From: Chara braunii
Lineage: Eukaryota; Plantae; Charophyceae
NCBI GenBank assembly: GCA_003427395.1
Contig: BFEA01000003.1
Coordinates: forward strand, 622,671 to 686,670
DNA: 64,000 bases
Direction of reading: 5' to 3'
The position numbers and the translations under genes are program-made. Of the stretch, positions 27,093-56,057 are shown one piece after another. Below the pieces are notes generated by a model that saw only the letters and a program-made list of their open reading frames with translations, was not told the DNA's origin and ran no database searches. Position 1 is the first letter of the stretch. Each line of letters opens with the position of its first letter.

Positions 27093-27109
27093 TGGCGTCG
27101 TTGCCGGGG
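27093..27109 (+). promoter_or_regulatory. Primer-binding site, tRNA-Asp type (Athila-like TGGCGCCGTTGCCGGGGA)
   Basis: tggcgtcgttgccggga. Confidence 0.75.
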
Positions 27110-27462
27110 ATAACAAAAGCTTACCGTTGTCCTTGGTGGAACGACATCCGGGTATGGGATTAAGGAGAAGATATGCATATAAGGAAAAATGAAGTATGCG
27201 ATGCTTGGTTTGACTATCTATGTTGGACGGATATTACTAATATAATAAGTTTTACTTTTGTTTTGATAGGCTGCCTGATCTAAGGGATCATTAGAGAAAT
27301 CCTGTAGAAGAAGAGGACCCTATTAAGATGGGTTCAAAGGAAAGAAACAGGTAGTAGTATTAGATCTGGTCCGCGAAGTAACTATGTAGGAATGCTGATA
27401 GGCACCATGGTACGTCAGAATGCTGAATGAAAGTTTTTATCTCTTCTTAACATGGAAGTGGA

Positions 27463-27496
27463 AACATATTATTCGTTAAAAAAGACATTATATTTT
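27463..27496 (+). repeat. Left terminal inverted repeat
   Basis: First 24 nt match the reverse complement of 56012-56035 at 22/24; similarity continues to ~35 nt. Confidence 0.88.
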
Positions 27497-27589
27497 AAAT
27501 TGGTACTTGCAAATGATTAATTTCATCTTAAAATCACCATATTTTGGACTTGAATGAAACTTAGGATACGAGTGGTGAACCCGAAGAAT

Positions 27590-28625
27590 GGAATTGACAG
27601 TCCATAAATTGAAACTGAACTGGCAATTCAAGGCAATCACGTACTGAACATGATGGATTAAGTGTGGATTTCATTGCATTTCCATAATTTTGTAACTTAA
27701 AAGTCGTTACGGTAATAACATGGAGTTGTCAGAAATTGAAACTCAAAAGAAGTTTCACTGTTACACTCAATGCAACGGGACACTGAACAACAAATTGAAT
27801 GTTGAATCTTGATTTCATCACACCTTGCTCAATTTTGTATGAGCATTGAATCGGACCTATTTTACATGACATTGTGACTCACATTCATTTATTGAAACTC
27901 AATCGAAGTATGACTTTAAGGTTGCAATCAAATGGTAAACGTGATGGTTTAAGTATGGATTCCGTCACACTTCGATAATATGTATACTAAGTTAAACTTA
28001 AAAGACGTAACTGGTGTGACTTGCATAAATTGAAACTCAATCTAAGAGTAAAGGCAATCATATGGTAAACGAGATGGTTTAAGTATGGATGTCAACGCAC
28101 TTAGGTAATTTATATACTACTAACTTAAAAGACGTAATTGGTGTGCCTTGCATAAATTGAAACTCAATCGAAGAGTAAAGATCATAACACGGTGAACGAG
28201 ATCGTTTAAGTATGAATTTCATCGCACTTCGATAATTTTGAACTTCATCGCACTTTGAGAATTTATGTTTAACTTACTTAAAAGACGTAACTGGCATGTC
28301 ATTATCATGCATTAAAATTCACTCGAACAATAAAGTTAACGTAATGAGACACAGAACGACAAGGTTGCGAATGACCTTTGAGTCTTCACCACACTTCGAT
28401 TAATTTCGTATATTACTAAGCATTGAGTCAAACGTACTTTACATGACATTGTATGAAGCAGAAACTGAAAGTCAATCGAAACGTCAATGCAATCACATGG
28501 TAAACAATATGGTTTAAGTATGGATTCCAACGCACATCGATAAATAATCATAAACTGGCATGACATTGTCATATTGAACTTAAATTCAAGTGAGTACTAT
28601 GGATTTCGTTTCACTTCAAGAAACA
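27590..28625. repeat. Left subterminal AT-rich tandem repeats (~125-155 bp)
   Basis: Recurrent aaattgaaactcaa..gcaatca..atggtttaagtatggat..aacttaaaagacgtaa, about seven units. Confidence 0.8.
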
Positions 28626-28816
28626 TCGTAATCATGAAAAATTAGAAGTTGACAATTGTATGCACACGTGCAAGAAATCGGAAATGCAAGACTGAACTAC
28701 GTCTAAATTAAATGCTACGAGTCAACCCAAGATCAAACTACATCTAAAATAAATGTTACGAGCGACCATAATCTAAACTTTCTGAAACGCTACCATTTAC
28801 AAATCTAAAGTTTTTG

Positions 28817-31800
28817 TCAGCGTATCAGCGTCACATGACAACCACACCCGTATAAGGCATTCAATGATGACCCGAAAGCCAGGGGTTGTGGCTGTCCCTT
28901 CGTCGCCACATTAGAGAATACCGAAATGTATTTCATCCTTACAAACCTACCGATACCTGCCAAGGATTTACCGATGACGTCACAAACACAACATGCCACT
29001 TGCTCTACCTCACGCCACTTATGAACCTCATCAATTTGACCAACAATCTCCAAATCGGACTGTCTGTTCTCGTAAAGAAGACGCAAATTCTCCATGTTGC
29101 GACCATAAATTCTAAGCTCGTTGCAAGAAACTAGCACTATAGCGTCTACCAAAGTCCGCTTTCAGTTTGAAGATGCCACACACAACACTCTACAAACGCC
29201 AGATCCAGCCAAAGACAACCGTCACAACAATATGACACATCATGCGGCCGCGTTCTGACACCACACAACGGATATCGTTCCAAAAACTGATTGTAGGACG
29301 CACAGTCCAACAACTCTTCTTTCAAGTTCGCAGACCACACGCGAGGTGACCTCGTGATGTTATCAAGGCAACAGTAAAACCGCTTATTCTCTTCCTGTCT
29401 GCATGTGGCGTGCGGGGACGGTAGTTGCCTGACGCCAATGGCATAATGAGGTACTTTGATCAGGCTCCCTCACTCCATCGCGGAAGCAAACTTGTACTCC
29501 TTATGCCATGGACATATCCTTGCCAACATCGCTCTATCCCATTCTGCCTCGGACCACGCATCGAGAGGCTTGTCCAAGAAGGGGACGATGCTCATCCACG
29601 TGTCGTTTTCGAACTCCGTTGTCATCGACTCGAGAATTTCGGTATTGCCTCCTGAACCACGCAATCCGGTTGCACAAGGGTGAATGAGATACGAATAACC
29701 ATGCCAATGGGCCATCACTCCTGTCGCACTCCCTGCACAAGACATGAAATGCAAACACAAATGAACATGAAATGTCGAAAAAGAGGAAAAATCGCCTTCA
29801 GGATTAACGTAATTTCAAAAATTGTTAAACCACCACCCAACCATCTTAAAAAATTCAACCCTAGACCATGGACAATGTTCGACACTTTGTCGTACTGCAA
29901 AATCATAGCAATTCACTAAGTGAAAAAAAAAAATGCTCCCATCCGAATTCCTGATCGTCCGAACAATTATTTTTAAAAATCGTACTCCCTCAATCTATTG
30001 GGCGGACGTGCAGTCGTCGCTCTTGTCCTCTGCATTTACACTCCCTTCACCAGATGGACTCAGATCTAAAAGTGCAGCTTCAACATTTAGTCGAACATTA
30101 GAAGGAATGACAAGTCCAGTCGTGAATGGTTTTGTACCTCGGGCCGGTCTCTCATAACGAAAAGAGATCGAATCAGCATGCTGCCATTGTGTCTGCTCAG
30201 TCATTTTCCATTGTTCTCCCATGCATTCCCATACAGTTGTTCGAGCGACTTTGCTCTCCTAGTTGGCACCCAGTATTCCACTGACACTTCATTATAATTC
30301 AACGAATCTTTTTCATCAACCACGTGAGAAATAGCCTTGCTCATCCAGATTGACACACCGCTGGACAGATCATCGTCGGAGGGGCGAAGGATAAAAAAGT
30401 GTCCACGTCAACATGCACGTGGGGGTCGAAACTAGTCTTCGAGCGATCTTTTCTTCGTCCAACAAATAGGGGTTCCCTGTCGTTGATGTTGACATTGCGA
30501 GGAGAAGGTTGTTGATCGCTTTCGGGCAGCCGTGATCTTGGCAAAAAACTTTCCAGAGGTTGTGAGGACAACCCGTTGTGCGATGATCTCATCGCCATGT
30601 TTGATAACCTCTTCCCAGTAACACAAAGTTCTTTCTCTCCTACTCACCTCATGATCATTGTAAGTGTACCACGTGAACGGTCTGCTCTCCAGCAACTCGT
30701 GAAATCGAATAACACCATTTTTGCCATTACAATAGTCATTTCAAGGAAGGGGTTGCACAGGAGGCGGGTCAAATGACCACGAAGGACCTGCATAGCTTTC
30801 ATCGGGGTTTTGATTAAACCAATAAACCGGACCTTCCTCGAGCAACCAGTTGTCGTCATCGCAAAACTCCTTGTACAACATGCCTGGATTATCTCCAACA
30901 ATCAAAAATTTAAGCAAGTGCGGTTTTGAATACCTGTAATGTCTGACGCAACCCATGGGTTTACTATACTTATCCAATCTGCCATCGTATCGAGGAAACA
31001 CACTTAGGAGACTTTTTGTGGGATTGCTCTATGAGCTCATAGAACTCGTCCATAATATAAGTGTCTATGTCTTTCAATTTCTTCGAGAAAACACTGAAAG
31101 TTGCGTCAACGTCTGTATGGGTATGTCCCACTCTCATGAAACCTATTTCTACCTCTTGAAAAACTTTGAACTTAACCAAGACTGCAACTAGCACACATAT
31201 GTACTTGTTCTTGTTTTCCCACCAACAATTATCTACTTGAATGCGCAAAAACGGTGGCAGTGGCGTCCCGCTCCCTTGAATTTCGACAAGGGTTCTCATA
31301 AGGCAAGTAGCAATTGTGTTCGAATCGTGTTTCAAATACGGAAACCACGTGTAAACATATATACTAGGGTATCTACCATGTGCAATGACGCCTATCAAAT
31401 TCGTCTTCATCATCATCTCGTGCCTAAGTGCTTTCGAGTAGTTCGCTTGACCAATATGGGGGATAGTTGTCTTCTTCTAATCCATGCCGTCAATGATGAG
31501 ACATAAACGCTCGTTCGGATGGACCATCGAATCAGTCTTCGCTCAACTATAGTCCAATCTGTGTTCAACTCGCCTCCTTTGGTGAGCTTTCGTATCCTCT
31601 CGAGCTCGTTCTTGATATCGAGGAAGAGGACCATACTGTATACGTTCCTTCAGTTCATGACAAATGACACACTTCGTGAACGTGTTAGAGTGCGCGAGGG
31701 AAACGTGAAAAAAGTATTTCCGCCACATTTTATAAAAGTTGGACTCAGACAAGACCGTGAGGTCAGCGGCCAGAAAGTCTGATTTGATGGACTCATAAAT

Positions 31801-33070
31801 TGATCTCTTCGTAAAAGCAGTTGGCAGTCAAAGTCTCGGCCTGGAAACCCTACCTTCGTCAGCCACCTCATTCGGCATGCTATTTGCATGACACTCGATA
31901 AACGTTTTCATGCTGGCAAGCATGGCGACCGTTTTATTGGTAGGCCGATATCTACCCGTCAGGTCATACTCGGAACGCACAAAGTCATTGTCGAAGCACT
32001 TTTTGGAGCTATAAAATGTATTACGCGAGACACCGAGTACATTGAAGTACGCCTTGACGCACATCGAACGTTCAAACTCCACAGGTCGGACACGTTTTTG
32101 TCCATCCTCATTTATCGTGAAATCTTTAATATTTTTCATCCACCACTCAACTCGCTCTACCGGACTCTTACGATACAGTCCTTGTCTAACCTTTCGGACT
32201 TCCTCAGGTGACATGTCGTAACAACAGTGAGTCTTGCAACATGCCATGTCGTGCACCATGAGAAGTCTTTTTTCGGACAACATGTTTCTCGTTCTTTTGT
32301 ATTGTTCTTTCCTCCTAGCGTCCCTATTAGCCATGCTATACGGTCGTCTTTTGCCTGGCAGAGGTGCGGGCAAAATTTGTAGTATTGTCGTTCTCTCTGC
32401 ATCACTCCTGCCAGACGCTTTCGACCCAGACTGACTCTGAACTGGAATCACATCATCACTTCGGATTTTGCGTTCGACTCGCCCGTGCTGTGGAAAGTTC
32501 CTCCGAAGAATATTCGGTGAAAACCAACTTCGTAGTACTGGAGCTAGCGTGAAGCAAATATGCACTTGACGAGGACTGTTGTCCAGACGAGTAATCAGTG
32601 GCCACTAGTTTCTCACTCTCATCATCAGAGGTTGTGAAAGAAGCAACCATTGACACACAACTCTTATGCGCCGAAGTTGTGGGGTGCACCTCATTAGGAA
32701 TGTGGAACTCGATTCGGGAGGCAGACGGTTCTTTGCCTGTGAACAGTGTCGCCAAATCCGTAGGCAATAGGATGCAACCCCCAAAACTCTCACGAAAAGC
32801 GAGACTTCGTTTTCAGGGGAAAACTGTAGTGGACTGTTGGAACGACGAACTGTGCGAAGAGCTCATCTGGGCCAACTCTAGGTGTTGTAGTTGGTAATGC
32901 AAGTCGATGGCCTGTTTGGTTTCCATAGCCTGGTTCATGCGGCCGTTCGTTGAACCGTTATTGGCGTCGTCATGTAACCGTCAGTGTAGCGGATGCGGTT
33001 CCCGTTAACGAAATCGATCGAACTCTCCAGTGTGGAGTGAACGGGTCATTCAAATTCGTTTCCACACCCT
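28817..33070 (-). pseudogene. Sola-like (DUF7869-type) DDE/D transposase, intron-containing, decayed
   Basis: CCKTHCC..MCVKAY..LGVS; F.KMW..F..V..FTKCVIC; CLIIDGMD*; QVDNCWWENKN; FMRVGHTHTDVD..FS. Stops are TGA/TAG from CGA/CAG. Outer exon limits approximate. Confidence 0.82.
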
Positions 33071-35059
33071 GCAAAATGGCGGAGCAAACTGTAAGCACGA
33101 ATACTAAAGAATTAAGGGATGACCCCACCAACCCCCCCCCCCTCCCCCCCCCTTCCCCAAAACCGATCCCCGACGTAGCATTTGAACACGGCGAGCTCGT
33201 CCGTTAGCGATGGGGGCCTCTGCAACCGATTTGCCGCATATTGAAGGCGCGGTTTGGCAGTCGGATGGCACAAATGATATGACAAACCACGACATGCGAA
33301 GTGTGCCGACATCCGAACTTCGCAGCGATCGGAATCCTTCGAATGCATTAATTGCATGTGCCGAAGGGCATCCAAATATTTCTTGCCTCGGCTCTGGCGA
33401 TAAGAATTGCGTCGATAGAAAAAAAAGATCCCCTTCCCCTTTTGCTTTTTACACTTTTTTCAGATGGACGTTGAAGTCCATAGCAACTATCAAAGTCAAA
33501 CCCCTTGACCTGTTTAAAGGCCTCCTATGATGGAACCCAGCTGTTACAAAGGGCCTTGGCCTGCCTACCCGTCATTCCCGCAGGTTGCTGAAGAGGGTAG
33601 GTCCTGCAACCGTCTTGGCGGTTGTGTAGCATCGAGAGGTAAGTCCCTCAAGGTGTGTGTTAGCGAACACTTAAGTGTCGAACGTGACCCTCAACGCCAC
33701 CGAGGGCCACGCGAGTATGGGCAGCACATAGCACGCCATCACTGCGACTGCTTGCGAACTCATGCATGGCCTGTCGTTATGAGAAAGCAGGTGTTCGCCC
33801 TACATTTATACAATGTATACCTGACGATGCCTGTAAGTGGTTTGCGACATTTGGTTATGGGTCGGACACCCAACGGGGCAGGCAGGAATCTTTGTTGTGA
33901 ATTTGTCAATCCAATTTTTTTGGCGTTGTGTGAGTTCTGCCAAGGAGGACGCGTTCTAGCATGTTTTAGACGGGTACAAGGAACGGTCCGATGCTCTTGG
34001 ATCACCGTGTGACAGAAGTCCGCCGGGATCCGAACTTGTCAGAAATCGAATCGACAACGAACCAGTTATTCATTAATTACCGTGAATTGAATGTCGATCA
34101 ATCGTCATCATAAATGCAAGGCTATAAGTGGTTGCAGATTAAAAATAACGTGGGTGAATGACCCTCAAGCCACCCCCATAAACCCCGATTAACTCCACCT
34201 CCAATTCGAGGATGTGTGCTGTCATTGCAAGCCTTTGCAGTCCGCGCGGCTTCGACACCGAAGCGTCTTCGCAGGCGAATAACAATAACCACCACAACAA
34301 CGTCGCAAACCGTCACATGCCGACGGGTTGTGGCAGAAGAAACAAACCAATTCGTCAGGTCACCAGCAATAGGACACGAGCTCTCGTTGTCGCTACACCA
34401 AATCGGGGTAAATCGGGGTCACAGAAGGGGCACACAGCCACACGCTCCCACGATGTGCTGGAAGTTTTTTTTTGCGCGGCAGCAGCGATTGGACTGTCGA
34501 CCCAGACCACAAACCCAAAAAATGGCTAAGCGGGGGCGCATCATCGACGGTTATGGAGAATAGAGCGTTAACCTCAAAGTCCGTCGAGACCTGAACGTGA
34601 ATGAACCAAATCACGGCAGACCGAAAAAGAACGTTGCCCCTGCCACCGTCAGCAACCCCCGTATACCTCGATCACGACAATACACAAGGTGAGATTGTTT
34701 GCGCCCCATAGTCCTATGGCAACGAAAACACATGCGACGGACCAGACCGTGGAAAAGGACGGTTAGCATAACCGAGAACTCGAAAGTTCATCGGGATCCA
34801 AACTTGGCGGTTGGGGAAGGCGCTAGGAACCTGTTTACGCTCGACTGCTCTCAACCGCCTGTCGGACGAGAACACGCTGAGAAGAAAGGCTATCCGTGGG
34901 TGTACCACCTGACAAAACGGTGCAGCACGGGCCCCAAGTGACTCCTGTAAACCCCGATTTTCTCCATCCACAAAGCTAGCTCGTGCGCTGTTCCAATCGT
35001 ACCCGTCATAATCTGTGCTGATTTTGACAAGTATCACAAAAATGGCGCGCGAAGCTTGA

Positions 35060-36490
35060 CACAAATGGTTAACGACCACCTGAAATTTCAGAATGAAAGA
35101 TTCTGAAGTGGTCTAAAACCGCTGAAATGGCCTGAAGGCACTTCATGTCATTTCAGAAGTTTTGGGTGGTCTGGAGGATAAGTTTTATGGTTTTTTTTTT
35201 TTTTCCCCTACCTGTTTTTTCACCTACTTCAGATCATTTCAGAAATTAAGGTGGGGACCTGAAACCTCTCAAGTGGTTGAAGCTTCTGAAAGAGGTTTCG
35301 GGTACCCCCATCCAACCATTTGGATGGGGGTACCTGAAACCCCTTTCAGAAGCTTGAGCCATTTCAGGTCCTTTTAGAAATTTCAGGTGGGCACCTGAAA
35401 CCGCTGAAATGGCTGAAGCTTCTGAAAGGGGTTTCGGGTACCCCCATTCAACCATTTGGATGGAGGTACCTGAAACCCCTTTCAGAAGCTTCAACCACTT
35501 CAGGTCATTTCAGGAATTTCAGGTGGGGACCTGAAACCGCTGAAGTGGCTGAAGCTTCTGAAAGGGGTTTCGGGTANNNNNNNNNNNNNNNNNNNNNNNN
35601 NNNNNNNNNNNNNNNNNNNNNNNNNNNNNNNNNNNNNNNNNNNNNNNNNNNNNNNNNNNNNNNNNNNNNNNNNNNNNNNNNNNNNNNNNNNNNNNNNNNN
35701 NNNNNNNNNNNNNNNNNNNNNNNNNNNNNNNNNNNNNNNNNNNNNNNNNNNNNNNNNNNNNNNNNNNNNNNNNNNNNNNNNNNNNNNNNNNNNNNNNNNN
35801 NNNNNNNNNNNNNNNNNNNNNNNNNNNNNNNNNNNNNNNNNNNNNNNNNNNNNNNNNNNNNNNNNNNNNNNNNNNNNNNNNNNNNNNNNNNNNNNNNNNN
35901 NNNNNNNNNNNNNNNNNNNNNNNNNNNNNNNNNNNNNNNNNNNNNNNNNNNNNNNNNNNNNNNNNNNNNNNNNNNNNNNNNNNNNNNNNNNNNNNNNNNN
36001 NNNNNNNNNNNNNNNNNNNNNNNNNNNNNNNNNNNNNNNNNNNNNNNNNNNNNNNNNNNNNNNNNNNNNNNNNNNNNNNNNNNNNNNNNNNNNNNNGAAA
36101 CCGCTGAAGTGGTTGAAGCTTCTGAAAGGGGTTTCGGGTACCCCCATCCAACCATTTGGATGGGGGTACCTGAAACCCCTTTCAGAAGCTTGAGCCATTT
36201 CAGGTTCTTTCAGAAATTTCAGGTGGGCACCTGAAATCGCTGAAATAGTTGAAGCTTCTGAAAGGGGTTTCGGGTACCCCCATCCAAGCATTTGGATGGA
36301 GGTACCTGAAACCCCTTTCAGAAGCTTCAGCCACTTCAGGTTATTTCAGGAATTTCAGGTGGGGTCCTGAAACCGCTGAAGTGGCTGAAGCTTCTGAAAG
36401 GGGTTTCGGGTACCCCCCTCCAACCATTTGGTGGGGACCTGAAGCAGTTGAAAGTGGCCTGTAAATAGTGTGTGTTGTTAACCATCTCTC
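35060..36490. mobile_element. Non-autonomous hAT-like element filled with 136-bp hairpin repeats (copy 1)
   Basis: Ends cacaaatggttaac / gttaaccatctctc; degenerate 8-bp TSD aagcttga/aaactcga; second copy at 61276. Confidence 0.7.
35250..36440. repeat. 136-bp tandem satellite, each unit a ~50-bp-stem palindrome (spans an N gap)
   Basis: Unit starts at 35250, 35386 and 35522; aagcttctgaaaggggtttcgggtacccccatccaa-ccat-ttggatgggggtacctgaaacccctttcagaagctt. Confidence 0.93.
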
Positions 36491-37092
36491 AAACTCGAAG
36501 ATCGTCATGGCGCGGAAAAAAGATATATGACCATGGCTGAAAGACCCCCTAGCAGCCCCAACAAAGCACGATTCGGCAAATCGACAAAGCGAGCTCCGAT
36601 TCGTGCACTAACAACGTCGACATATGACAGCGCGAACCGCAAAATACACCGAGACACGAGCATGTAAGCGACCGAATTCCATGCCAAAAATGGACCCGGC
36701 CGTTGGCACCGTCGACAACCCCCATAAAACCCCACAAAGGCAATTCACAAGGCGAGCATTGTTGCGCACCCCTAGGCCTCTAGCAATCAAAACTTCTGCG
36801 AAGCTCCAGACCGTTGAAAAGGATTGTCAGATTTACCCGGACCCTCCAAGTCTACCTGGATCCGAAGTCGACGGGTGCAGAAGTAGCGACGAACCGGTTT
36901 TTGTGCGGCCGCAGCTATTGGAATGGCGGGTTAGCGGGTGCACAGAAGAAAGGCTATGGGTGGGTGCACCGCATCATGAAACGGCTCATTGTGGACCCCA
37001 ACCGACCCCTATAAACAACGATCATCCCATCGAGAAAGCGCGCTCATGCGCCGTCACTGCGAATTTCCACGGCCTGAACGTTGTCGAAATTA

Positions 37093-37236
37093 CACAAGCG
37101 GTTATCGGGTAGCTGAAAATTCATGAATGAAAATTATGAAGTGAGAGTTTTGGGCAGTCTGAAAATCCTGAATGGTTCTGAAGTGGTGAAAGGTCTGAAG
37201 ACCCTGAAAACCACCTGTTTAGGCAGGCTGCATCCT
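37093..37236. mobile_element. 5' end of a third, more diverged member of the same small-element family
   Basis: cacaagcggttatc..ctgaaaattcatgaatgaaa resembles cac....ggttaac..ctgaaatttcagaatgaaa; runs into a gap. Confidence 0.5.
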
Positions 37237-37827
37237 NNNNNNNNNNNNNNNNNNNNNNNNNNNNNNNNNNNNNNNNNNNNNNNNNNNNNNNNNNNNNNNN
37301 NNNNNNNNNNNNNNNNNNNNNNNNNNNNNNNNNNNNNNNNNNNNNNNNNNNNNNNNNNNNNNNNNNNNNNNNNNNNNNNNNNNNNNNNNNNNNNNNNNNN
37401 NNNNNNNNNNNNNNNNNNNNNNNNNNNNNNNNNNNNNNNNNNNNNNNNNNNNNNNNNNNNNNNNNNNNNNNNNNNNNNNNNNNNNNNNNNNNNNNNNNNN
37501 NNNNNNNNNNNNNNNNNNNNNNNNNNNNNNNNNNNNNNNNNNNNNNNNNNNNNNNNNNNNNNNNNNNNNNNNNNNNNNNNNNNNNNNNNNNNNNNNNNNN
37601 NNNNNNNNNNNNNNNNNNNNNNNNNNNNNNNNNNNNNNNNNNNNNNNNNNNNNNNNNNNNNNNNNNNNNNNNNNNNNNNNNNNNNNNNNNNNNNNNNNNN
37701 NNNNNNNNNNNNNNNNNNNNNNNNNNNNNNNNNNNNNNNNNNNNNNNNNNNNNNNNNNNNNNNNNNNNNNNNNNNNNNNNNNNNNNNNNNNNNNNNNNNN
37801 NNNNNNNNNNNNNNNNNNNNNNNNNNN

Positions 37828-37865
<38 letters not shown>
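37828..37865. repeat. (TG)n microsatellite at gap edge
   Basis: Read directly. Confidence 0.9.
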
Positions 37866-37867
<2 letters not shown>

Positions 37868-38090
37868 GGGTCCTTTTTTTTTCTTTTCGGGGGGTGGGGG
37901 AATCCCCCTAACACGACTCAGACGGCCCATGCAGGCTATCTGAAGGGTCCTCGCAGCCATGTGGCGTGGAACCCCCCACCAAAATCAAGGCAGGCAGTGA
38001 ATATGAAGTGAGCACGAGCGGGCCGAATATATACTCAAGATTCGAATTCAGGTATGTGTTTCGGCAGTTATGGGTTCCTCACGTAGCTAG

Positions 38091-38492
38091 GCCCTGCCGT
38101 GATTCTCAGGGCTTGGCTGCACTACTCACCAAATGTGCAAAACTAGAATGAATCTTCTGCAGAACATGGAATAATACGTCGCCATATGTTCTGTCTTTTG
38201 TGCATGTGGTGAGTAGAGGCTCTTAGGGCCACTGCACGTATTCCTAAGAAAAGAAAAACGAGAGAAATGTCTCGTTTTTCTGTTTTCTTGTTTGTTTTTT
38301 TTTTTTTTCGTTTGTTTTTTTTTTCTCGTTTTTCTTTTTTTAGGAATACGTGCAGTGGCCCTAAGGGCCTCTACTCACCACATGCACAAAAGACAACATA
38401 TGGCGACGTATTATTCCATTGTTCTGCAGAAGATTCATTCTAGTTTTGCACGTTTGATGAGTACTACAGCCAAGCCCTGAGAACGGTAGGGC
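38091..38492. mobile_element. Foldback/MITE with ~175-bp inverted arms
   Basis: 38091-38265 is the reverse complement of ~38325-38492; T-rich spacer; flanked by CTAG (or TA) on both sides. Confidence 0.85.
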
Positions 38493-41400: not shown

Positions 41401-41499
41401 GACAGGGCGATGACCTCCATCACGTTCCCATGCCTTCGTTGTGCAACATCCACCAGGGGTCGAACGTTGAGGCATGCACCACGCCTCCCAAACGATGAC

Positions 41500-45191: not shown

Positions 45192-45277
<86 letters not shown>

Positions 45278-46745
45278 CTTAAGTTCAGATCCCGACGAAC
45301 TTCGCGTTTTCACATGTCTTTTGTTCTGACTGTGGTCTTTATGGTGCCCCGTGGATTGCAACAAGAACCCAAGTTCGCCCGCATCCGAACTTCTCGTTTT
45401 TCCCTGGCGGGGTAAACGAAATGGTCCATCGAGTCCGACCTTCGAACGTTGGCTGCATCCGTTGCCAAACTTCACATATTGCGAAACCGGATAGCAGAAC
45501 AAGTTTGGATGTCAAAGGACTACGCATTTTCATTTGACCTCCGGCGTGACTGTGGGTTTCCTGCTGCGTCGTGGATTTGACCAAACACGCAAGTACAAAT
45601 CCTATCTCTCTCTCGCACCCTCCTGAAGTTCGGATCCCAGCGAACTTCGCGTTTCCACATGTCCTTTGATCTGACTGTGGTCTTCCTGGTGCCCCTTGGA
45701 TTGCAACAAGAACCCAAGTTTGCCCGGATCCGAACTTCTCGTTTTGCCCTGGGGGGGTAACCGAAATGGTTCATCGAGTCCGACCTTCGAACGTTGGTTG
45801 CATCCATTGCCAAACTTCACATATTGCGAAATCGGATAGCATATAAAGTTTGGATGCCGGCGTACTACGCATTTTCATCTGACCTCCGACGTGACTCTGG
45901 TTTTCCTGATGCATCTTGGGTTTTAATAACCACACAAGTGCGGATCCTGTCTCGTTCTCTGTCTCTCTCTCTCTCTCACAACCTCCTTAAGTTCGGATCC
46001 CGACAAACTTCGTATTTTCGCCAGTCCATTTAACTGACCGTGGTCTTCCAGATCCCCCGTGGATTGCAATAACAGCCCGAGCTCGCCCTCGTCAGGACTT
46101 CGCATTTTGCCGAAACGGGGTCACAAAACATGCTTACCGGGGTCTAACATTCAAACTTGGCTGCATCCGTTGTCGAACTTCACATATCGCCAAATCGAAC
46201 AGCAGAACAATTTCGGATGCCGGCGGAGTTGTCATTTTCAACTGACCTCTGATGTAAGTGTGTATCTCTCTCCGTCTCTCTCTCTCGCACCCTCCTTAAG
46301 TTCGGATCTCGGCGAACTTCGCTTTTTTGGCTGTTCTTTGGTCTATCTGTGGTCTTCCTTGTGCCCCATGGATCGCAAAAACGGCCCAAGTTCGACCGCG
46401 TCCGAACTTCTTATTTTGCCCAAATGCAGTGACCGAATGTGCTTGCACAAGTATGGCCATCGAACGCTGGCTGCATCGGCTATCAAGCTTCAACTATTGC
46501 GAAACTGGAAAGCATAAGAAATTCGGATGCTAGCGCACTACTTATTTTCATGTGGCCTCTGATGCGACTGTGGTCTTGCTGGTGCCCCATGGATTTCACC
46601 AACCACACAAGTACGGATCATGTCTCTCTCTCTCTGGCTCTCTCTCTCGTACCCTCTTCAGATCGCAGCGAACTTCACGTGCTCACCTGTCCGAAGTGGG
46701 ATGTCGGAGGGTCTTTGTGTATGATGTTCGCTAGGATCCGAACTT
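44340..46745. repeat. ~310-360-bp tandem repeat array (6-7 units) with (CT)n spacers, upstream of the cargo gene
   Basis: Unit starts aagttc(g/a)gatc at ~44358, 44691, 45281, 45626, 45989 and 46298; internal ~180-bp duplication 44828-45190; (CT)n(CA)n at 45196-45274. Confidence 0.88.
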
Positions 46746-49700
46746 AAAGTGTGGCTTTTGCAACGATGCAATGGTGCGGGCGTGTGCAGTTCAGGATTCT
46801 TCGACTGCGTTTGTGGCACTTCGCCAGGGCCTGCGTCGTGGTTTGACGGTGAACGGACTATTGCTGTTGTGGTTTGCCAGACGCTAACCTCGTGGTGGGT
46901 TGCTTCATTTGCGTTCTCGTTCGCAGACAGGATGTCTTCGTCGAGGGGCGAGGAGGAGCCAGTCGGGACCTCTGAGAAGGGATCATAAAAAGACTCCACA
47001 AGGCGGTCATCTACTGGCCTGGAATCGTGGTCGAACCACGCGAAGTCGAAATGGTTCGTCGACTGGTGATGTGGAGACGCTTCCAACCCCGTTGCGCAGC
47101 CATGTGGACCGGTAATCTTCGTCGATGACAATAAACGGCGTAGACTGCTTGGGGTCGTCTTGTGGTGGGAGGACACGAAGGGGGGACGGCGACAACTTGA
47201 ATTCTATATGCAAAATGTTTATGGCGCCAATGGTAACATCGTCGCCAATTCGAAGGGGGCGCTGTTGGATATGGAATTGTTCGAGCAGTTCAGAGTGGGT
47301 GTTGTGAACACCCCGTTCTACAGCGAACTCGTTCGCGTGGGCGATTTTGTTTTGGCACGTGAATTTTTTAACATGTTGGAGGAAAAAAACATCGTCCTCT
47401 ACGTCCCCTGCGACGTCGGCCCCACCCAAGAGCTCTCGTTGCCATTGCGACTGTGCAGCGGTTGCGAATCCAGCAGGGCAACGTCGGAGGGGGGAGATCT
47501 CCGTTCTGGTGCTGCTACTTAGCTGCATCGTGGCGAGAGTCGTAGTCCGTTCGATGACAGCGAGGATAAGGGGCCTCCACAGATGACGACTTCGTCGTTG
47601 AGGTGAGCAGACCGGTCTTTGTTGTCTATACCTGGGGTTCTGGATGACGCTCCGGGTTGAGAGGAGCTTGCAGCAGCTGTAGGAAATGTGGCAGTCTATT
47701 AAGAGGTCGACTTGGAGACTAGTGAGGGCCAGGGTACGGAGGAGGGAACCGCGGGCGGCTAGGGCACGCAAGGCACTCCACAAAAGAGGAGGGGAGATCG
47801 TCGTGAGGAGTTGGCCGGCTCTTCGAAGAAATTGAAGAGCAAGGCCCTAAGGACTGTGGGGGAGAAACGGAAGGGAACCGAGGGGGAGCGGGGCCGGCTA
47901 GGTACCAAACGTCCGACTTCGAAACAGAAGGCGCCTGCGTCAGGACCATCCTCTTCACCGACGCCACGGCCTCCCATTGACGTCGACGCCGGGTACTTCC
48001 TCGAGTACAAGGACGATGTTAGGACAAAGCGGGAGTTCGAGATTAGCCGTGCGCATGTCGTCGACCATCGGGACTGGGAGGATCTGTACAACCAGCAGTC
48101 CTTGGATCCCGTCCTCGTTGAAGGGATCAAAGAAGCGATGCGGTTGGTGTTCGAAAACAAAGAGCAGTCGTATGAGTTGCCAACCCTGAAGCTGGCACCG
48201 CTAGGGCTCTAGAAACCAACTCCCGAGAACAAGGCACAACGTTTTAAGCCAGAGGAATGGATGGATAAGCTGGCATGACAATACTACTACTACGTGGTGT
48301 ATGGGCAGCATAACGCGGCTGCAGCCAGGTCGTTGCTCGGCAACGAGGTGGCCAAGAAATACAATTTTGAGCGGTGGCCTGGACAAATGGTGTACTTTTC
48401 AGACGACGACTTCGAAGGGTATTTCCTTGTCAGTTCCCAGGACAACAAGAAGGACCTCAAGGCGCCACCGAGACATTTGAAGCTGTCAATGAAAGACATT
48501 CTGTGGCAGTGGAAGCACAACGGTTTCTCGAGAGTTGTTATGGGGAACCCCAGCGGAAAACAGGAACAGGTCCGGAAATGGCATGAATTCTGTACGGTGG
48601 CGCTTCATAAGACGCCGTACAACAACTTGTGGATTCTAGCGGACCAGAAGGGGGATGACGCCATCAAGAAGTGAAACGCTGCCCTGCGTTCCTATTCCCC
48701 GTAGGCGATGGTCGAAAAGAACGTTTGGAAACTGGCCGTTGATTATTTTGAGAGATAGGAGACAAGTAGATTGCTCGGCCACGACGGCGCAAAGTGGATC
48801 ATGAGGAAGAAGAAGGTAAGAAACGCCAAGCCCGGGGTTGCCAACATCGACAACGAAAAGCTAGGAAGGAAGGAGGTCCTGTACAACGCCCCTATGGACC
48901 CGGCAACGAGGAAAGGCAAAAAGGAGAAAGACGAGGGCGATTGTTTCGTGCAAGTGCCTGAGCCGGACACACATTGTTGGAAAGCGATGGAATCGCTAAC
49001 CGCCAACGAGAAATGTCGCGTTCTGAAGAAGGTGCTCGCTTGCGAGGTGGTCTGGGTCCAGGCCGGCTCCTCGGCGTTGGCGAAGCTGGGGAAGCTCGGC
49101 GTGCAGGAAATGGTGCATTTGGTGAAGTGCGATCACGTGCTCGTACGTTTTTGGAATTACTACCAGTTCAAGCACGAGAAGAGGCCGGATGCCGATTGGA
49201 TCCAGAGGTACCCGTTCCTGAAAACAAGGTCTGCAATTTTCAAGCAGTTCGAAAGTCGTGGATTGGATGCTGAGTTGTGGGACGGTAGCAGGAAATATGT
49301 TACTGACTCCTCGCTGTTCAAGGAATGCCCACCTTACATGGGTTGCAACGACGACCACTCGATTGAGGCGACGGAGAAGTTGGCCGGTCACAGGAAGTTG
49401 TCCATCGACTGGAGAAACAAGGTTCTCTCCGTGTTTACTGACAGTAGACTGAAGAGTCGCGAGACTGCTCTTGCTGAAGGCATTGTGCACATAAAATGGA
49501 AAGACACAGGCGACGTGACATCCATCGCACCGTTCGGCAACGAGCCCTTGGAGGCGAACATCACGAGTGCGGAGCTGAAGGAGGCGGTGGCTGCCACAAA
49601 GAGCCACACATTCTTCCTTGATCTCTGCAAACCGGTTGACCTGAAGCTGTGGAAACCGCAAGCGTTCGACACTCTGGATTCCCAACTTCAGACGTGGTGT

Positions 49701-52300
49701 CCGTCGCATTGGACGCTCGTCGTTTTCGTGCTCTGGCAGCAGAACCTCTCGTTTCTGGCCAGCATGAACCACCTTTCTTTCGTGAAGCTGCTGAAAGGGA
49801 CGTGGGTGAGGAGGACTTAGCAGAAGAAAAGCTTCCCCGTCGAGAACAATTTGTACACGGAAGACGACTGGATGTACATCCTCTTCAAGGGTGAAGATTT
49901 GCTCGCTAACACGTCCGTCGTTTACGAGGGAAGGATGCCGGCAGGTGCCGCTGCTGCAGTGCGGTTGCCACAGAAGGTTACCCAAACGGATGTGTCCGAG
50001 ATTCTGTTCACGCCTTGCGACTGGTTGCAGACCTCGCCTGCACGTCAGGGCATTGTGTACGGGAACATGGAACACAATCCGACCCAATTCGTTAATCTTC
50101 TTGAATTCGTCAGCAAGAAGGGAGAGGGTGTCGCCTTCCTTGGGAAGCCGCACGGGGGAACCGTGTGGGAACTACTGAAGGTAGGCCGACACGTTGTCGT
50201 GATGGAAGGGAACTCCGACCTGTTGCAATTCACAATGCAAGTCGTCAAAAGCGAGGTCAATTCGGGGGCCCACAATTGTGAGTTCGTGGTCGTGAAGGAG
50301 ACACGGGATCGCTTGTGGAACAACAAGACGGACATGTGGTTCAAGTGAGTGAGAGGAAGTCGAACAAGATATATGACTTCTTGTTCCTGCAAACGAGGCC
50401 GAGGAAGGACACTGACGCCGAGTACGTGCGCCGCAGGGACCATATATTCACGCTGCTCGACAACTAACACGACGCCTCCTGCATGAACGCGAAGACATTC
50501 CTCGAAAGGTTGCAGTCCCTGTACTTCGTGGAGTCAGAGGAGGAGTTGAAGTTCGACAGTTACTCTTCCTTGATCTCTACGGAAGACGAGGAAACCACAG
50601 GCGTCGAATTCGACGCGAACGCGAACGAGGAGGAGAGCGACACCGAGAGTCTCGACCTGCATTACGACCCACCTCCCGCACAACACGCCACAGGGTCGTC
50701 GTTGGCAGGTCTGTCAACAAGTCCGACATCCCTCGTGTCACCGATGGCAAAACCGACGCCTCGCACAACCCCAATGAAGTTGCTGGAGAGACTGAAAGCT
50801 CTGGCCCCCACCCATCGCACATTGCGTCCCGGGTCTGACATCCCGCTCGATCATCTGTCTTGGAAAGGATGACAACATTCACTTCCTTGCTGAGCCGCAA
50901 AGCCATTCGTCTGAGGTGGATTGGGGACATGACATGATTTGGCATCCAAGAGTCATCCAGCCAGCGATCCGAAAGGGCGAGTGGATCATGGTCGTCGCTG
51001 TCCCGGGCAGTGGATGGATGCCCCTCTCTCGCGAGTTGAAGACAAACTTCATGGACCTCGCCAGGATTTCGGTCCTTCAAAAAGTGAGGGCTGAAAATGA
51101 CTCGTTTGCACCTGACGACGTGTCCGTCATTTCCACATTCGGGCGACTTATCGACGAACTTCAGGACAAGTGCTGGTTGGAACTAACGGAGGACTAATAC
51201 AAACTCGATACAGCCCCCTCGAAGGGCATGGTGGACTGGAAAATTCCCCCTCCCAGTGGGGCACACGGGAGTTCTGGTGGCTGGCCACCAGACAGTGGGG
51301 GGGACGGAGGCGACAATGCGGGGGGTGGCAAAGGAGTCCCGCCTAGTGGGTAGGGCAGGTCTCATGGTGACACCGCGACAACGGAAGGCAGTGGTGAGGT
51401 GGCGGGGGAGGCCTTCGGTCGTCAGCAGTCTACTGGTCCCGGTCCGGAGGACTCGACACAGTCCGCCGGCTCGGTGAGGGAGATGATGGCAGCCTTGGTT
51501 GCTCTCCGTGGCGGCTCGGGCGGAACATTCAAGTCCGTCGGGATCCGAACTACAATGGTTGAGGTGCCGACATAACGGTCGGACACGGAGAGCTGGTCGG
51601 GAGTGGGGGTGCCGAGTCATGATCCCACAATTGACAGCGGTGAGGTGAGGGAAGGGAATGCGCCGCCTGAGGGGGAGGGACGACCCCTTCGGTTGGAGCG
51701 AGAGGGTACAAGTGGAGGGCTCGGTGACAGGTGGACGACGAAGTTCGCCAACATCCGAACTTCTTCAGGCAGGGGGGGGCGGCCAGGGATTCTGGTGCCA
51801 CCGGGAGGGGCAGCGTGCGTGGAGCCAGAAGGGCGGTCGTCGGGATTCGACAGGGGTTCGGGAGAAATGGCTGGATTGCATGCAAGGGAAGGAGGGGGGG
51901 TAATGGAGGAAGGGAAGGAAAGGGAGGAAGGAGAGGAAGGGGAGGAAGGGGAGGAAGAAGGGTATGAAGGGGAGGAAGAGGAGGAGGAAGGGGAGGAAGG
52001 AGAGAAAGGGGGAGAAACGGAGTTGAGTGAGTTGTTTGAAGGAAAGGAGGGTGCGAAAGGGGACATCGATATTGGAGACGACGAACGGACAGTGAGTGAC
52101 GATGATGCCTGATCTGGGGAATCGTCTGACGGATTCGGGTTGCTGTACGGAGAACATCGTGAGGATGATGATGACGACGATGCGACGGCAATGGAGATGG
52201 AGACACAGGTGGTCAGCAACCTTTCGGCATAACGTGATGACTATGAGGTTCAAGCACTGACGTATGCTGTCGATCTCCAACACCAGTTCAACGAGGCTCT
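46740..52300 (+). pseudogene. Large transposon cargo ORF: ParB/Srx-like domain, degenerate beta-class N4/N6 DNA-methyltransferase-like domain, acidic low-complexity tail
   Basis: YNQQSLDPVLVEGIKEAM..PTLKL..YYVVYGQHNAAAARSL (ParB/DGQHR-like); TW.R..EDDWMYILFKG..EHNPTQFVNLLEFVSKKGEGVAFLG..GTVWELLKVGRHVVVMEGN (MTase C-terminal pattern); ORFs 47811-51197 largely collinear through stops. Confidence 0.65.
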
Positions 52301-53321
52301 TGTTGCTGTGAGCCTATCTAAACCAAGTGGCCGTATAGACGTCGAAGAAGTTATAGATGGTATCCTAGGCAACCACCACGTGTCCGCGCAACCGTCCACA
52401 ACGCCTGATGTCGACGACCCTCGCAACGTTAAACCTTCCGCGACATCTGCCATCGCTTTCTCGCCGCCAAACTCTCTGATACTGTTGGCGACCTTCGCCA
52501 GTCGAGGGGAAGGCGGGTCGGGGGACGACAACATGTCACGTCCCCGAAAAAAATTAGGGTCGGCACTCAAGCTCTCGACGTGCTGGCCTTGCCCGCGCCA
52601 ACTTCACCGACAAAGGAGTGGAGGGACAAACCGGCAGGTAAGCTGTGAGAAACGCCACTCTGTCTGCGCGCCCAGGCTTCCAAGAGCGAGAGTGCGACTT
52701 CCTTCATAGTCCGGATGTCGATGGAATACCTTCAGTACCATACACACAAGGAGTGACCACAGTGTCTGTCGATGCGGGGAGTTCCTGATGCCGGCATACT
52801 ACAGCCACCACTCCTTCCAAGTACATGTGACCGACCTTCCTGTGAGTCGGCCAGGTCGTTGGTCGCGTGCAGGGCATACTACAACGAAAACATGTATTTT
52901 TTTGTTGAAGCGTTCCCTCACAAAATGGAATGACGGTTTTTCTTTCTCAGAAAGAGTGGTGGTTTTAGTCCGCCAGGATCTGCACTTCCAATGTCGATGC
53001 GTAATGCGGTTAGACTTTGTGTGCCTGGATTGGGAAAAAGTCTACTGGAATTCGGACTTCGGGGATGTTTCGCTTCCACTTATGTGGCTTGTTGTGGTTT
53101 TCTTTTCTAAAAGGCGGGGGTGTCGAGCTCGAATGCGCTAGTCGTTTTTTTTTCCAGTCGCGCTCACGCACCTTGGTGCTCATGGTCATGACAAAACGAG
53201 GTTCTGTAATTGGATAGGTCCTGCGTCTTTTAGATTACGTGGTTCTCAAATTGTCACTTTCGTCAGGTTCATGTTGGGAAACGTGTATTCATTTTCCATT
53301 TTGTTTTTCTTCTGTTGTACA

Positions 53322-54058
53322 GGGGTAGGGTCATCTCGAATACTGAGGTCCTCAAAATATCCAAAACACATATTGCAGGCAGTCCCGGGGTTGACGACAA
53401 AACACAAGGATAGGGTTTGATGTCGAGATCGGGAAGAAGGAGCGTGCCATTGCAATTGAGGAGTGTTTTTTCCGTCTGCCCCCAGAGAAAGAGATGTATC
53501 CACGATCTGTGACTAGAGGTCAGGCCATGTATGAGAAATACTTAGCTACTCGTCGTGCAATGAAGGAGAATCCTTAGAACAACGTTTCTCACTACCCCGC
53601 GTGTCCTTTGCTCGATATTGTGCAGTGCGGGCCACAACTCCTGGAACATGCCGGGAAGATTCGTTGCAGTGACTGCGCCTCGAAGCTTGCGGGTTTTGGA
53701 GGATATTAAACGAGGCTTTGTGCCACCTGACACTGTTCTCTCTACCCTCGGCGATGGTCAATTGCGAATTGCAGCAAAAGATTTTCTCACCCTCTCGTAT
53801 ATCGACGGCAGGGTGAATGATGAGGTGGTCAATTTTTACATGGCGCTATTGAGGTCGACCACATATGCAATATGTAACATCCCATCAGGCCTTCGAGTCT
53901 TCAACTTTAGTTCATTCTTCTTCAGTAAACTGCATCTTCAAGGACACGACGGGGTCGAAAGGTGGGCTAAAAACGTGGATCTGCTTCAATATGATATTAT
54001 CTTTGTTCCTGTCCATAAAGATAATGATCACTGAATCTTCCTTTCCGTTACCTTGAGA
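53322..54058 (+). pseudogene. Ulp1/SENP (peptidase C48) SUMO-protease domain exon
   Basis: TL..DGRVNDEVVNFYM..FNFSSFFFSKL....DGVERW..NVDLLQYDIIFVPVH..DH(W->stop); flanked by a tgtacAG acceptor and a GTAATG donor. Confidence 0.85.
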
Positions 54059-55029
54059 GGTAATGTTTTTGAAATTTTTTATTTTTTTCCTCTCTTGAAA
54101 TTTTTTATTCTTTTCCTCGCGTTATAGTTGATTTAAGTTTTTACCTTAGTGTTTTCGAGTTGATTGTATAGTATTTGGAACGTCGAACATTACATAGGCG
54201 GTCGGGTAGGGGTTGAAAGTCGGTAGCAACAAATATTGTGGTAGAGGGAGTTCCAAGACACGTGGATGGAGCTAGTTGCGGGGTGTTTATGTTGATGTTT
54301 GTGACATTGTTGCAACGTGGTGGTCAACCACCTTTCAAGTTCTCTTGTAAAAAAAATTCCACTTATTAAACGACAATTGGCATAATGTATCTTTGAATGT
54401 CGTTATCTTTGATGGATTTCATTGACTTAGAGACTTTCTTTTGAAAAAATTTCATTCATTAATGATTATATTGTTTTAAATCCTGACATTACTTAACTGT
54501 CGTTTTCACAACGACATTTCTTTCTTTTGTCATTGCGAGTTTGTGTTGTCTTTGCCATGCTCGTTGTTAGTCTGGAGTCACGTCTTGACTTTCGAATTTC
54601 TATCACGTTTCAATCGTCTATCATGCGGCGGAGCAAGTGCGCATTGTGTTCCTTGTTTCAAATTGTGTTCAGGTCAACCAAAATTGTACTTATGATTGAC
54701 ATCAAATACTATTAATAATTGTACTGTATGCAACGAAAATTGGTGTGTGGATGCAAGACAAGTCTCGGTGAGTGTTTGAGTGTACGATTCATTATGCAAA
54801 AACCACTAACATCACGTCTCTTGCGTGTGCATAAAATCACATGCCTTGGGACCGCCTGCATTACATGTAAACAATAACTTTGTGTTTGTACAAAAGTCTT
54901 TTGCGCAAGGTCAATTACAGTGCGGAGTCGATCAAAAATATGCAAGACTTAAAGTTCTTATGTGATATGACTGTTGTCGCAGAAAACGAACTTGTATGTC
55001 GAAATTAACTGCTTGTTATAAGACGAACG

Positions 55030-55935
55030 GTGAACATTTTGATTTGTACTTCGACTACTGTTATAACTGTTACATTACTTTCTTTGAAGTCTACAATGAC
55101 ACATTGTTCAAAGCGAAAATATTCAACAAGGATACAATCCTGCCTGACACGTTGCTCATCATAATTGTAAACAAGTATGAATCTCAACACACTTTCGCAC
55201 ATGAGGTGAGATCGTGGGCGTGTCGATCATCACACTAAGTATTCTAAAGAAGTAAGATCTCATCAACATCCAAACAACCGTTTCGGGCGAGATGATTGAC
55301 ATGCCTGCAGAGCTTAGGGTTTTGAGTTGTACTTCGACTACTGGTGTAACTGTTACATTACTTTCTTTGAAGTCTACAATGACACACTGTTCAAAGCGAA
55401 AATGTTGAACAAGGATACAATCCTAACACCTTGCTCATCATAATTGTAAACAAGTATGGATCTCAACACACTTCCGCATATAAGGCGAGAGATGGTGGGC
55501 GTGTTCATCATCACACTAAGTATTCTAAAAAAGTTCGGATCTCATCAACATCCAAACAACCATCTCGGGCGAGATGATTGGCATGCCTACAGAACTTAGG
55601 AATACCCCAAAGAAATGTGTTATCCAATAAGGATTCAATCATGACACCTAGCTCATCACATTTATGAACTTTGAGTTTAACAAGTATGGATCTCAACACA
55701 CTTCCGCACAGGGTTCCCGGATGGTCGTGCCTATCATTACACTAAGTCTTTTAAAAAAGTCCGGATCTCATAAAACATCCAAACAACCGTCTCAGGTGAG
55801 AGGATGGATATGATTTTATAATTTATGGATAAACTAAAAAATTATATTATCCAACAAGGATTCAATCATGACACCTTGGTCATCTTATTTATAAAGTTCA
55901 ACAAGTATGGATCTCATCACACTTCCGCATTTAGG
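55030..55935. repeat. Right subterminal repeats (~220-285 bp)
   Basis: aacaaggat.caatc.tg..aacaagtatggatctcaacacacttccgca four times; tgtacttcgactactg block duplicated. Confidence 0.82.
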
Positions 55936-56000
55936 GCGAGTGGATGGGCATGCTACGTTGCTTAGGCTGCATCCAAAAATGAATTCGTTAAAAAGAGGAC

Positions 56001-56035
56001 ATAATATCATGGTCTATTTTAACGAATAACATGTT
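56001..56035 (-). repeat. Right terminal inverted repeat
   Basis: Reverse complement aacatgttattcgttaaaatagaccatgatatt matches the left end. Confidence 0.88.
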
Positions 56036-56057
56036 TGGAATAAGAGATTCGGTCAAG

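Follow-up and report, generated by a model that had tools for sequence, protein, structure and literature searches.

DNA transposons of the Sola superfamily are defined by several features including a 4-bp target-site duplication (TSD), the reported range of their terminal inverted repeats (TIRs) is 11-1124 bp, and their size is usually of 2-9 kb, with some of them exceeding 15 kb (PMC10741241). They possess a DDD-type transposase, are also found in the green lineage (Physcomitrella), and have been described as reaching into bacteria. As regards the choice of the target, AWWT is the hallmark of Sola1 (PMC3845634), and AT-rich targets or AWWT are reported for Sola2 (PMC3627910). Within this superfamily, the Sola2-Fanzor transposons of dictyostelids measure 10-15 kb, have 4-bp TSDs and TIRs of 12-22 bp, and encode, as a second large protein derived from mobile elements of prokaryotes, the TnpB-like Fanzor nuclease (PMC3627910). 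The present work deals with a stretch of 64,000 nucleotides from Chara braunii (assembly GCA_003427395.1, contig BFEA01000003.1, positions 622,671 to 686,670 of the forward strand), hereafter called the window and numbered from its first letter, and more precisely with its segment 27463-56035, in which an earlier note, made from the letters alone, had recognized a giant Sola-like transposon with intact ends and a divergently transcribed cargo. With a probability that we put at roughly 0.85, this segment is a decayed copy of a C. braunii family of cut-and-paste DNA transposons of 16-29 kb, endowed with a Sola-type transposase and an accessory module. The layout of the family is fixed: the left end is followed by a minus-strand transposase with a DUF7869 domain (DDD, probably of the Sola type), then come 10-17 kb of element-specific arrays, and an accessory module on the plus strand precedes the right end. 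In this module, a ParB/Srx-like domain is fused to a beta-class methyltransferase fold deprived of its catalytic motifs, and is followed by a SUMO-type protease of the Ulp1 kind. The copy in the window inserted into a gypsy-type retrotransposon, and later gained two nested repeats together with many stops and frameshifts.

The element spans 28,573 bp in the window, a length that counts two N gaps of estimated size. Its left TIR (27463-27486, + strand) and its right TIR (56012-56035, - strand) both begin with AACATG and match as inverted repeats at 22 of 24 positions, just as noticed beforehand, and the terminal core common to the copies of the family corresponds to the first 19 of these bases, AACATGTTATTCGTTAAAA. 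Directly outside the termini, the 4-mer TGGA is found at 27459-27462 and, as a perfect match, at 56036-56039, which confirms the duplication claimed in the earlier note. According to our own arithmetic, chance alone would produce about 0.02 inverted pairs of this quality (22 of 24) in 64 kb, and about 7e-5 when a matching 4-bp duplication has to accompany them. Besides, the core occurs once more on the inward side, at 55981-55993, where it is able to pair with the right terminus and lets the last 55 bases of the element (55981-56035) form a hairpin of 11-13 bp; this arrangement is conserved in another copy of the family, L001, and has no counterpart at the left end.

The insertion separates the leader of a retrotransposon of the Ty3/gypsy type from the start of its gag, the right flank opening with the gag ATG at 56058, followed by a CCHC knuckle and an aspartyl protease. 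No uninterrupted gypsy copy was found when the flanks were compared by BLAST with the first eleven loci, and one was reached afterwards via the gag paralog P0114, at the locus L012. This host paralog is 73-77% identical to the window flanks: its positions 5529-5976 align to window 27010-27457, and its positions 5978-8738, directly onward, align to window 56035-58781. The junction reads ..AACAGGGAAATTTGAGTAAGAGG.. in L012, with a single 4-mer, TTGA, at the site, and ..AACATGGAAG[TGGA], element, [TGGA]ATAAGAGA.. in the window. A copy with such an empty site, in which the gypsy leader directly joins gag as after excision of the element, had been predicted in the earlier note, and L012 provides it. 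Given the TGGA duplication and this empty-site paralog, the two ends of the window copy belong to a single insertion. In addition, the short-read contigs of four DNA runs that match window 53000-58900 at 80% identity or more amount to about 4,300-4,600 per run, without any usable loose end at 56035/56036. They pile up on gag as well as on the Ulp1 region and the subterminal repeats of the right side, so that the transposon and gag families are both abundant. The longest uninterrupted piece of the accessory gene (48759-49817) is 100% identical to CBR_g32134 of C. braunii (scaffold BFEA01000003.1, GCA_003427395.1). This gene model (P0003, window 48801-57985) is a chimera, in which pieces of the accessory open reading frame (ORF) and the acidic region downstream are spliced onto the neighbouring gag across the right end of the element.

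Eight further copies of the element, fetched via paralogs, were compared with the window, and two of them are complete. L003 is a collinear copy of 29,440 bp with the same termini, flanked by CTTT on both sides, and L005 is a deletion derivative of 16,039 bp lacking window 30881-49017, again with the same termini and flanked by CCAT on both sides. A perfect TSD of 4 bp is found in the three complete copies out of three when the window is included. In four other loci (L001, L004, L009 and L011), similarity to the window stops exactly at base 56035, and the adjoining flanks read TATC, GACA, ACAT and ACGT, respectively; together with TGGA, CTTT and CCAT, these make seven target 4-mers without evident consensus. 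The identity among copies is of 73-90%. The earlier note expected the termini to pair around a transposase and cargo elsewhere in the genome, which is the case over 29.4 kb in L003, and the 16-kb deletion derivative L005 has paired ends too. The same head-to-head layout, with a spacer of 17 kb, is observed in L007, a member of a distant sister family whose transposase pieces are 45-70% identical to those of the window and whose accessory pieces are 37-43% identical. Both gene sets are broken in the window copy, which is a dead and decayed member of its family, and L003 is less decayed but also broken. The description of intact ends given beforehand is correct for the ends, and does not extend to the genes, which both carry stops and frameshifts.

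The remnant of the transposase gene (28502-32604, - strand) is collinear with L003 1022-5676 at 84% identity and comprises a DUF7869 core at 30973-31476 and an N-terminal part at 31546-32604. More precisely, the ORF piece 30973-31476 (- strand) matches Pfam DUF7869 with an E value of 5.6e-48, and the pieces 31546-31827 and 31831-32604 share one frame, split by stops. In-frame stops are located at 31828-31830 and after the DYS and DGMD motifs (31477-31545), a frameshift is found near 31000, and the subsequent pieces lie in another frame. The minus-strand transposase with DGMD, ENKN and GHTH motifs that the earlier note had reported is substantiated by the DUF7869 match and by the motifs themselves, DGMD being followed by an in-frame stop. 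In L003, an uninterrupted ORF of 637 aa is kept, with a DUF7869 match at E 5.7e-58 and a weak helix-turn-helix. Relatives of the transposase include a metagenome protein of 1041 aa (45% identity) and proteins from sea urchin (34%) and coral (29%), and the DUF7869 clusters that neighbour it in the Atlas come mostly from molluscs and arthropods. The ratio of non-synonymous to synonymous substitutions (dN/dS, by the Nei-Gojobori method here and below) is 0.39-0.43 for the transposase, the value against L003 being 0.39, and indicates purifying selection on this gene as well as on the accessory set.

The superfamily placement was approached by comparing these sequences by eye with the Sola2 transposases printed in the supplement of PMC3627910. 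Four blocks, a CxxC followed by three acidic blocks, start at 266 (CxxC), 326 (MDFKEN), 413 (SDGAKHFKS) and 454 (HGKSDVD) in Sola2 DFa-2, and at 340 (CAVC), 400 (DGMD), 486 (ADNC) and 526 (TDVD) in L003, i.e. in the same order and with spacings of 60/87/41 and 60/86/40, respectively. The Chara motifs themselves (DGMD, ADNCWRENKN and GHTHTDVD) differ from those of Sola2. Since the family combines a 4-bp duplication with a motif order and spacing as in Sola2, its membership of the Sola superfamily is likely, as judged by eye; the TSD and the length of the TIRs, with their 19-bp core, fall within what has been reported for Sola. The large size has Sola precedents as well, whether in the elements of more than 15 kb (PMC10741241) or in the Sola2-Fanzor elements of 10-15 kb (PMC3627910). 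The term Sola-like used in the earlier note can be kept as far as the TSD and this by-eye comparison of the motifs are concerned, but the target preference of Sola1 and Sola2 is not seen. The Chara family is also set apart by its 16-29 kb, compared to the usual 2-9 kb, and by the addition of a conserved, divergently oriented accessory module and of kilobases of internal arrays. With regard to Sola2-Fanzor, the second protein is not a Fanzor nuclease but a ParB/methyltransferase-like protein associated with Ulp1, and, whereas 3' halves were swapped between Sola2-Fanzor families, the Chara module co-diverges with the transposase.

It could be argued that the 4-bp TSD is a coincidence, and that this giant cut-and-paste transposon belongs to a DUF7869 superfamily distinct from Sola, being either new or nearer to the bacterial ISAzo13 type. 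Indeed, Pfam offers only a domain of unknown function, the AWWT (PMC3845634) and AT-rich (PMC3627910) preferences are absent, and in one Atlas DUF7869 cluster 11% of the members carry PF07592 (DDE_Tnp_ISAZ013). However, a link to ISAzo13 need not contradict membership, as Sola is itself said to reach into bacteria, and a coincidence would have to account both for the four blocks in the same order and with near-identical spacing as in a published Sola2 transposase, and for a 4-bp TSD with short TIRs fitting the definition of the superfamily (PMC10741241). A placement outside Sola is for these reasons regarded as unlikely.

On the accessory side, the remnant of accessory gene 1 (47763-51194, + strand) comprises, according to a tblastn map, a ParB/Srx-like domain at about 48020-48465, a methyltransferase-like domain at about 49476-50345, and a conserved C-terminal domain at 50796-51194. 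The long frame 47763-50345 holds seven in-frame stops in 861 codons, of mixed type and several of them at CpG-decay positions; beyond 50345, frameshifts occur and the conserved pieces lie in other frames. An acidic low-complexity stretch with a linker (51576-52706, + strand), conserved in other copies, separates this gene from the protease. The protease module of the Ulp1/C48 type (53564-54366, + strand) has at least two exons, the piece 53564-54031, which ends in the His region and scores 28.8 bits against Peptidase_C48 for a cut-off of 20.7, and the piece 54217-54366, which holds the SCGVF motif of the Cys. The His region and the Cys motif of a putative C48 triad are in this way in separate exons, its Asp and the splice joins being presumed. 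A C48 relative is present in L006 (E 4.2e-12), and a metagenome contig carries an uninterrupted accessory homolog of 1419 aa followed downstream by a separate C48 gene. The plus-strand cargo proposed in the earlier note is thereby found again in the frame 47763-50345 and in the piece 53564-54031. As a whole, the accessory family amounts to about 100 representative clusters, and the 19 others that were looked up are all from C. braunii bar one, a JGI metagenome protein.

When full-length accessory proteins were compared with Pfam and PHROGs, no significant sequence-level family was obtained, the assignments given here coming from fold comparison only. The structure was predicted for the intact 1095-aa ORF of L007, the relative with 37-43% identity, from an alignment of 66 homologs, with a mean predicted local distance difference test score (pLDDT) of 82.7. 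Residues 508-789 of this model match beta-class N6/N4 DNA methyltransferases (PF01555 type) over about 220 of 250 residues, with VIA Z scores of 15-16.6 (M.BceJIV 16.6, CcrM 16.4, PvuII and RsrI 15.7, the rotifer N4CMT being also among the matches), and Foldseek gives an E value of 1.3e-5 and a TMt of 0.71; the predicted domain has the beta-class methyltransferase fold in a permuted topology. Across about 35 family members, the motif IV position reads LDLC(D/E/K)PVD and the motif I position FLGK.HA, the DPPY motif for catalysis, of the general form (D/S/N)PP(Y/F/W), and the FxGxG motif for S-adenosylmethionine (SAM) being absent from these positions, and the acidic residue after strand 2 is retained. 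As motifs IV and I are replaced, methyl transfer by the accessory protein is unlikely, but SAM might still be bound. When the first 284 residues were folded separately (pLDDT 80), the top 8 VIA rows were all proteins of the ParB/Srx fold with Z scores of 4.9-7.6, i.e. PadC (7.6), KorB (7.4), SerK (7.2) and pNOB8 ParB (6.7), then SbnI, sulfiredoxins and Atu1540. In the same line, Foldseek ranks Noc, ParB and Srx (sulfiredoxin) first, with E values of 4e-3 and weaker, and the model thus matches the ParB/Srx fold to a moderate degree. The motif of the family in this domain, YY.V.GQH(N/T), lacks the Asp and Arg of the nucleotide-binding or catalytic ParB/Srx motif (GxxR / DGxHR type), and a profile of the N-terminal region has no match among the PDB sequences.

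A ParB/Srx-like domain preceding a methyltransferase fold is a trait that the Chara protein has in common with the bacterial and phage ParB-domain beta-class methyltransferases (with M.BceJIV, CcrM, RsrI and PvuII for the folds) and with the horizontally acquired N4CMT of bdelloid rotifers. In contrast to these enzymes, it has no Pfam or PHROGs match, it reads (D/E/K)PVD and FLGK.HA in place of DPPY and FxGxG, and GQH(N/T) in place of the arginine-rich ParB motif, and it contains about 500 additional residues, besides its link to Ulp1.

Whether the accessory genes belong to the element or merely travel with it was considered in the light of their evolution. Between the window copy and four others, dN/dS of accessory gene 1 is 0.20-0.22 in frame, versus 1.2-1.7 out of frame; the C-terminal domain gives 0.20, and the short Ulp1 exon 0.37-0.74. 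Accessory gene 1 is under purifying selection (dN/dS about 0.21). Because the module was kept by selection while the lineages of the element diverged to about 40% identity, it is a conserved accessory module and not a chance capture, and the cargo-bearing character claimed in the earlier note should be reworded: the second gene set is real, but cargo is not the best name for it. Ulp1-like genes have repeatedly been captured by plant transposons, as in KI-MULE and in CACTA cases. The ParB/methyltransferase-like and Ulp1 genes could, on this general ground, be seen as passive passengers, i.e. host or viral genes captured without any role by a transduplication of the Pack-MULE type, and the loss of the catalytic motifs of the methyltransferase fold would fit such a view. 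Yet these degenerate motifs are themselves conserved family-wide, a dN/dS of about 0.21 between diverged copies means that selection acted while the lineages spread, the divergence of the module follows that of the transposase to as little as about 40% identity, and the homologs are almost confined to these C. braunii repeats and to one metagenome contig with the same gene order, so that mere passengers are very unlikely.

Between the two arms, the spacer of the window copy is 12-13 kb long and mostly consists of element-specific tandem arrays and two nested repeats, with about 4 kb in its middle (40.3-44.3 kb) without match. On the transposase side, array A (34596-40301) is made of units of about 290 bp in both orientations, is common to L001 and L003, and is broken by nested repeats and by the two N gaps. 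On the accessory side, array B (44285-46650) is made of tandem units of about 181/345 bp and is common to L001, L003, L004 and L009. The spacers of L001, L003 and L004 are mutually collinear, and the window proves to share their architecture when it is compared with higher sensitivity. A Pfam scan of ten spacer ORFs revealed no domain, from which the spacer is taken as non-coding. Close to the ends, subterminal arrays are present as the earlier note had indicated, on the left at 27924-28264 (2.4 copies of a 127-bp unit, plus a 26-bp repeat) and on the right at 55037-55930 (units of about 227-283 bp, conserved in L001, L003, L005 and L009). The repeat-rich spacer of about 13 kb that this note had described exists too, with the adjustment that most of it is made of tandem arrays of the element itself and only two nested repeats are added to them.

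The first nested repeat is a 136-bp palindromic satellite (35066-36475), which contains the N gap 35577-36096 and is not of the family. It is the sole palindromic array in the window copy, in which perfect palindromes of at least 12 bp are never repeated and a single 10-mer is found twice. None of the other fetched loci contains this satellite, which recurs outside the element at 61703-61915, beside another N gap, hence its interpretation as a nested insertion; palindromes specific to the family in front of each gene are accordingly not supported by this copy. The satellite resembles a small mobile unit with flanking repeats of the GTTAAC type, and its arrays break the assembly, both loci abutting N gaps. 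The second is a hairpin-type repeat (37828-38496), probably of the type of a miniature inverted-repeat transposable element, with arms at 38192-38267 and 38320-38395 that are 96% complementary; it also occurs beside or inside other copies (L001 27563-27667, L003 22187-22322) and in L012 (3154-3598). The second N gap (37237-37827) lies between an array A unit and this hairpin repeat. Both gaps are therefore located in the non-coding spacer and none in the genes. A misjoin of two copies at these gaps is argued against by the matching duplication, by the flanks being adjacent in L012, and by the same order of parts in L003. The lack of an empty site, unpaired termini elsewhere and a scaffold misjoin at the N gaps were the three observations that the earlier note named as contrary to its proposal, and all three came out in its favour, the gaps falling in spacer repeats between ends that carry a matching 4-bp duplication. 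The view that two unrelated elements, a transposon with the transposase and a repeat with ParB/methyltransferase and Ulp1 genes, lie side by side by an accident of nesting or scaffolding can draw on the two N gaps between the gene sets, on the foreign repeats nested in the spacer, and on L004 and L008, in which no transposase was found within 10-11 kb upstream of the accessory gene. It is nonetheless largely refuted and extremely improbable, as the same order, orientation, termini and duplications are found in L003 and in the deleted form L005, and the distant family L007 repeats this order and orientation. Moreover, arrays A and B are specific to the family and keep their collinearity from copy to copy, and both ends are assigned to one insertion by the TGGA duplication together with the empty-site paralog.

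Several points nevertheless weigh against the interpretation of the segment as a copy of a giant Sola-type transposon with an accessory module. Fully intact genes are found in none of the copies examined, L003 and L005 contain assembly gaps of their own, and the continuity of the window copy across its two N gaps is deduced rather than read through. The link to Sola2 is a comparison of motifs by eye, with DUF7869 as the only Pfam label, and the seven target 4-mers do not reflect an AWWT or AT-rich preference. In addition, the ParB/Srx match is moderate (Z below 8), and the functions of the accessory proteins are proposals drawn from models.

As far as the working of the element is concerned, the transposase would bind the termini and cut with a 4-bp stagger, the accessory protein would be a DNA-binding and probably non-methylating partner, and the Ulp1 protease would act on SUMO conjugates. 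One or both of these accessory products might help transposition by assembling the distant ends, or favour escape from host silencing. Taken jointly, these steps are put forward as a tentative scheme, which is less likely than not to hold. Equally speculative is the idea that the ParB-like/pseudo-methyltransferase protein and Ulp1 represent an element-encoded system of bacterial or viral ancestry, long kept by a Sola-type transposon, that might bridge ends up to 29 kb apart via the internal arrays, or shield the chromatin from SUMO- or methylation-dependent silencing, a possibility that we consider doubtful at this stage.

Plant transposons with two genes are known from CACTA/En-Spm (TnpA and TnpD), PIF/Harbinger (a Myb-like ORF1 and the transposase) and Ulp1-bearing MULEs, and some CACTA families reach 10-30 kb. 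They resemble the Chara family by the association of a transposase with a second protein, by arrays as possible binding sites, by the recurrence of Ulp1, and by the size in the case of some CACTA. In contrast, the Chara family has no Transposase_21/tnp2, DDE_Tnp_4 or MULE domain and its TSD is of 4 bp instead of 3 or 9-11 bp; the features of CACTA/En-Spm are not encountered, the termini being AACATG and the transposase being of the DUF7869 and not of the tnp2 type. Starships, Teratorn and Mavericks/Polintons are giant cargo-carrying elements of eukaryotes. Like the Chara family, they measure tens of kb, contain genes beyond the mobilizing enzyme, and have defined ends with target duplications. 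Nevertheless, the Chara family relies on a DDD transposase and not on a tyrosine recombinase, a piggyBac-herpesvirus fusion, or a protein-primed polymerase with an integrase, and its extra content is a fixed small module with repeats rather than a variable cargo; Pfam scans of the ORFs of the element show only DUF7869 and C48, without the tyrosine-recombinase captain of Starships. A search confined to papers returned none on this family, on DUF7869, on Sola in Chara, or on a ParB/methyltransferase/Ulp1 module in a eukaryotic transposon.

Other mobile sequences are found around the copies. At L008, no DUF7869 was found within 10 kb upstream of the accessory-gene paralog, the only distance covered, and long overlapping ORFs of 679, 967 and 550 aa, on both strands and without Pfam domains, lie at 5360-8300, upstream of this distant paralog. 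At L011 (1-21497), a DUF7869 gene of another family, P0104, which is 52% identical to the L003 transposase and sits between two Peptidase_C48 genes, adjoins an inverted copy of the window family, and this arrangement suggests clustered or nested insertions of related elements. In the window itself, the integrase of another mobile element (H2C2, rve and SH3) is located at 770-2466 (+ strand), and an element without long terminal repeats (non-LTR), with reverse transcriptase and EEP endonuclease, at 4045-6025 (- strand). Finally, within 24383-25377, two inverted arms (24614-24870 and 25377-25121) that are 99.6% identical flank the N gap 24871-25120; they represent a large palindrome, unless they are an artefact of the assembly.

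It is rare for a cut-and-paste transposon to approach 30 kb and to keep several genes in a fixed layout, and here the ends, the duplications and the empty site are documented, in a host that belongs to the streptophyte algae and stands close to land plants. Two folds usually met in DNA-handling enzymes of bacteria and phages are united in the accessory protein, which is under selection although the catalytic motifs are gone, and this, as far as the models go, points to a structural or DNA-reading role. In terms of annotation, the family inflates the gene set of C. braunii, as about 100 protein clusters, including the chimeric CBR_g32134, are transposon genes annotated as host genes; such transposon-derived clusters call for masking when genomes are compared with a view to plant terrestrialisation. 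If true, a role in bridging the ends or in shielding the element from silencing would represent an accessory function of a kind not yet described for transposons of the plant lineage.

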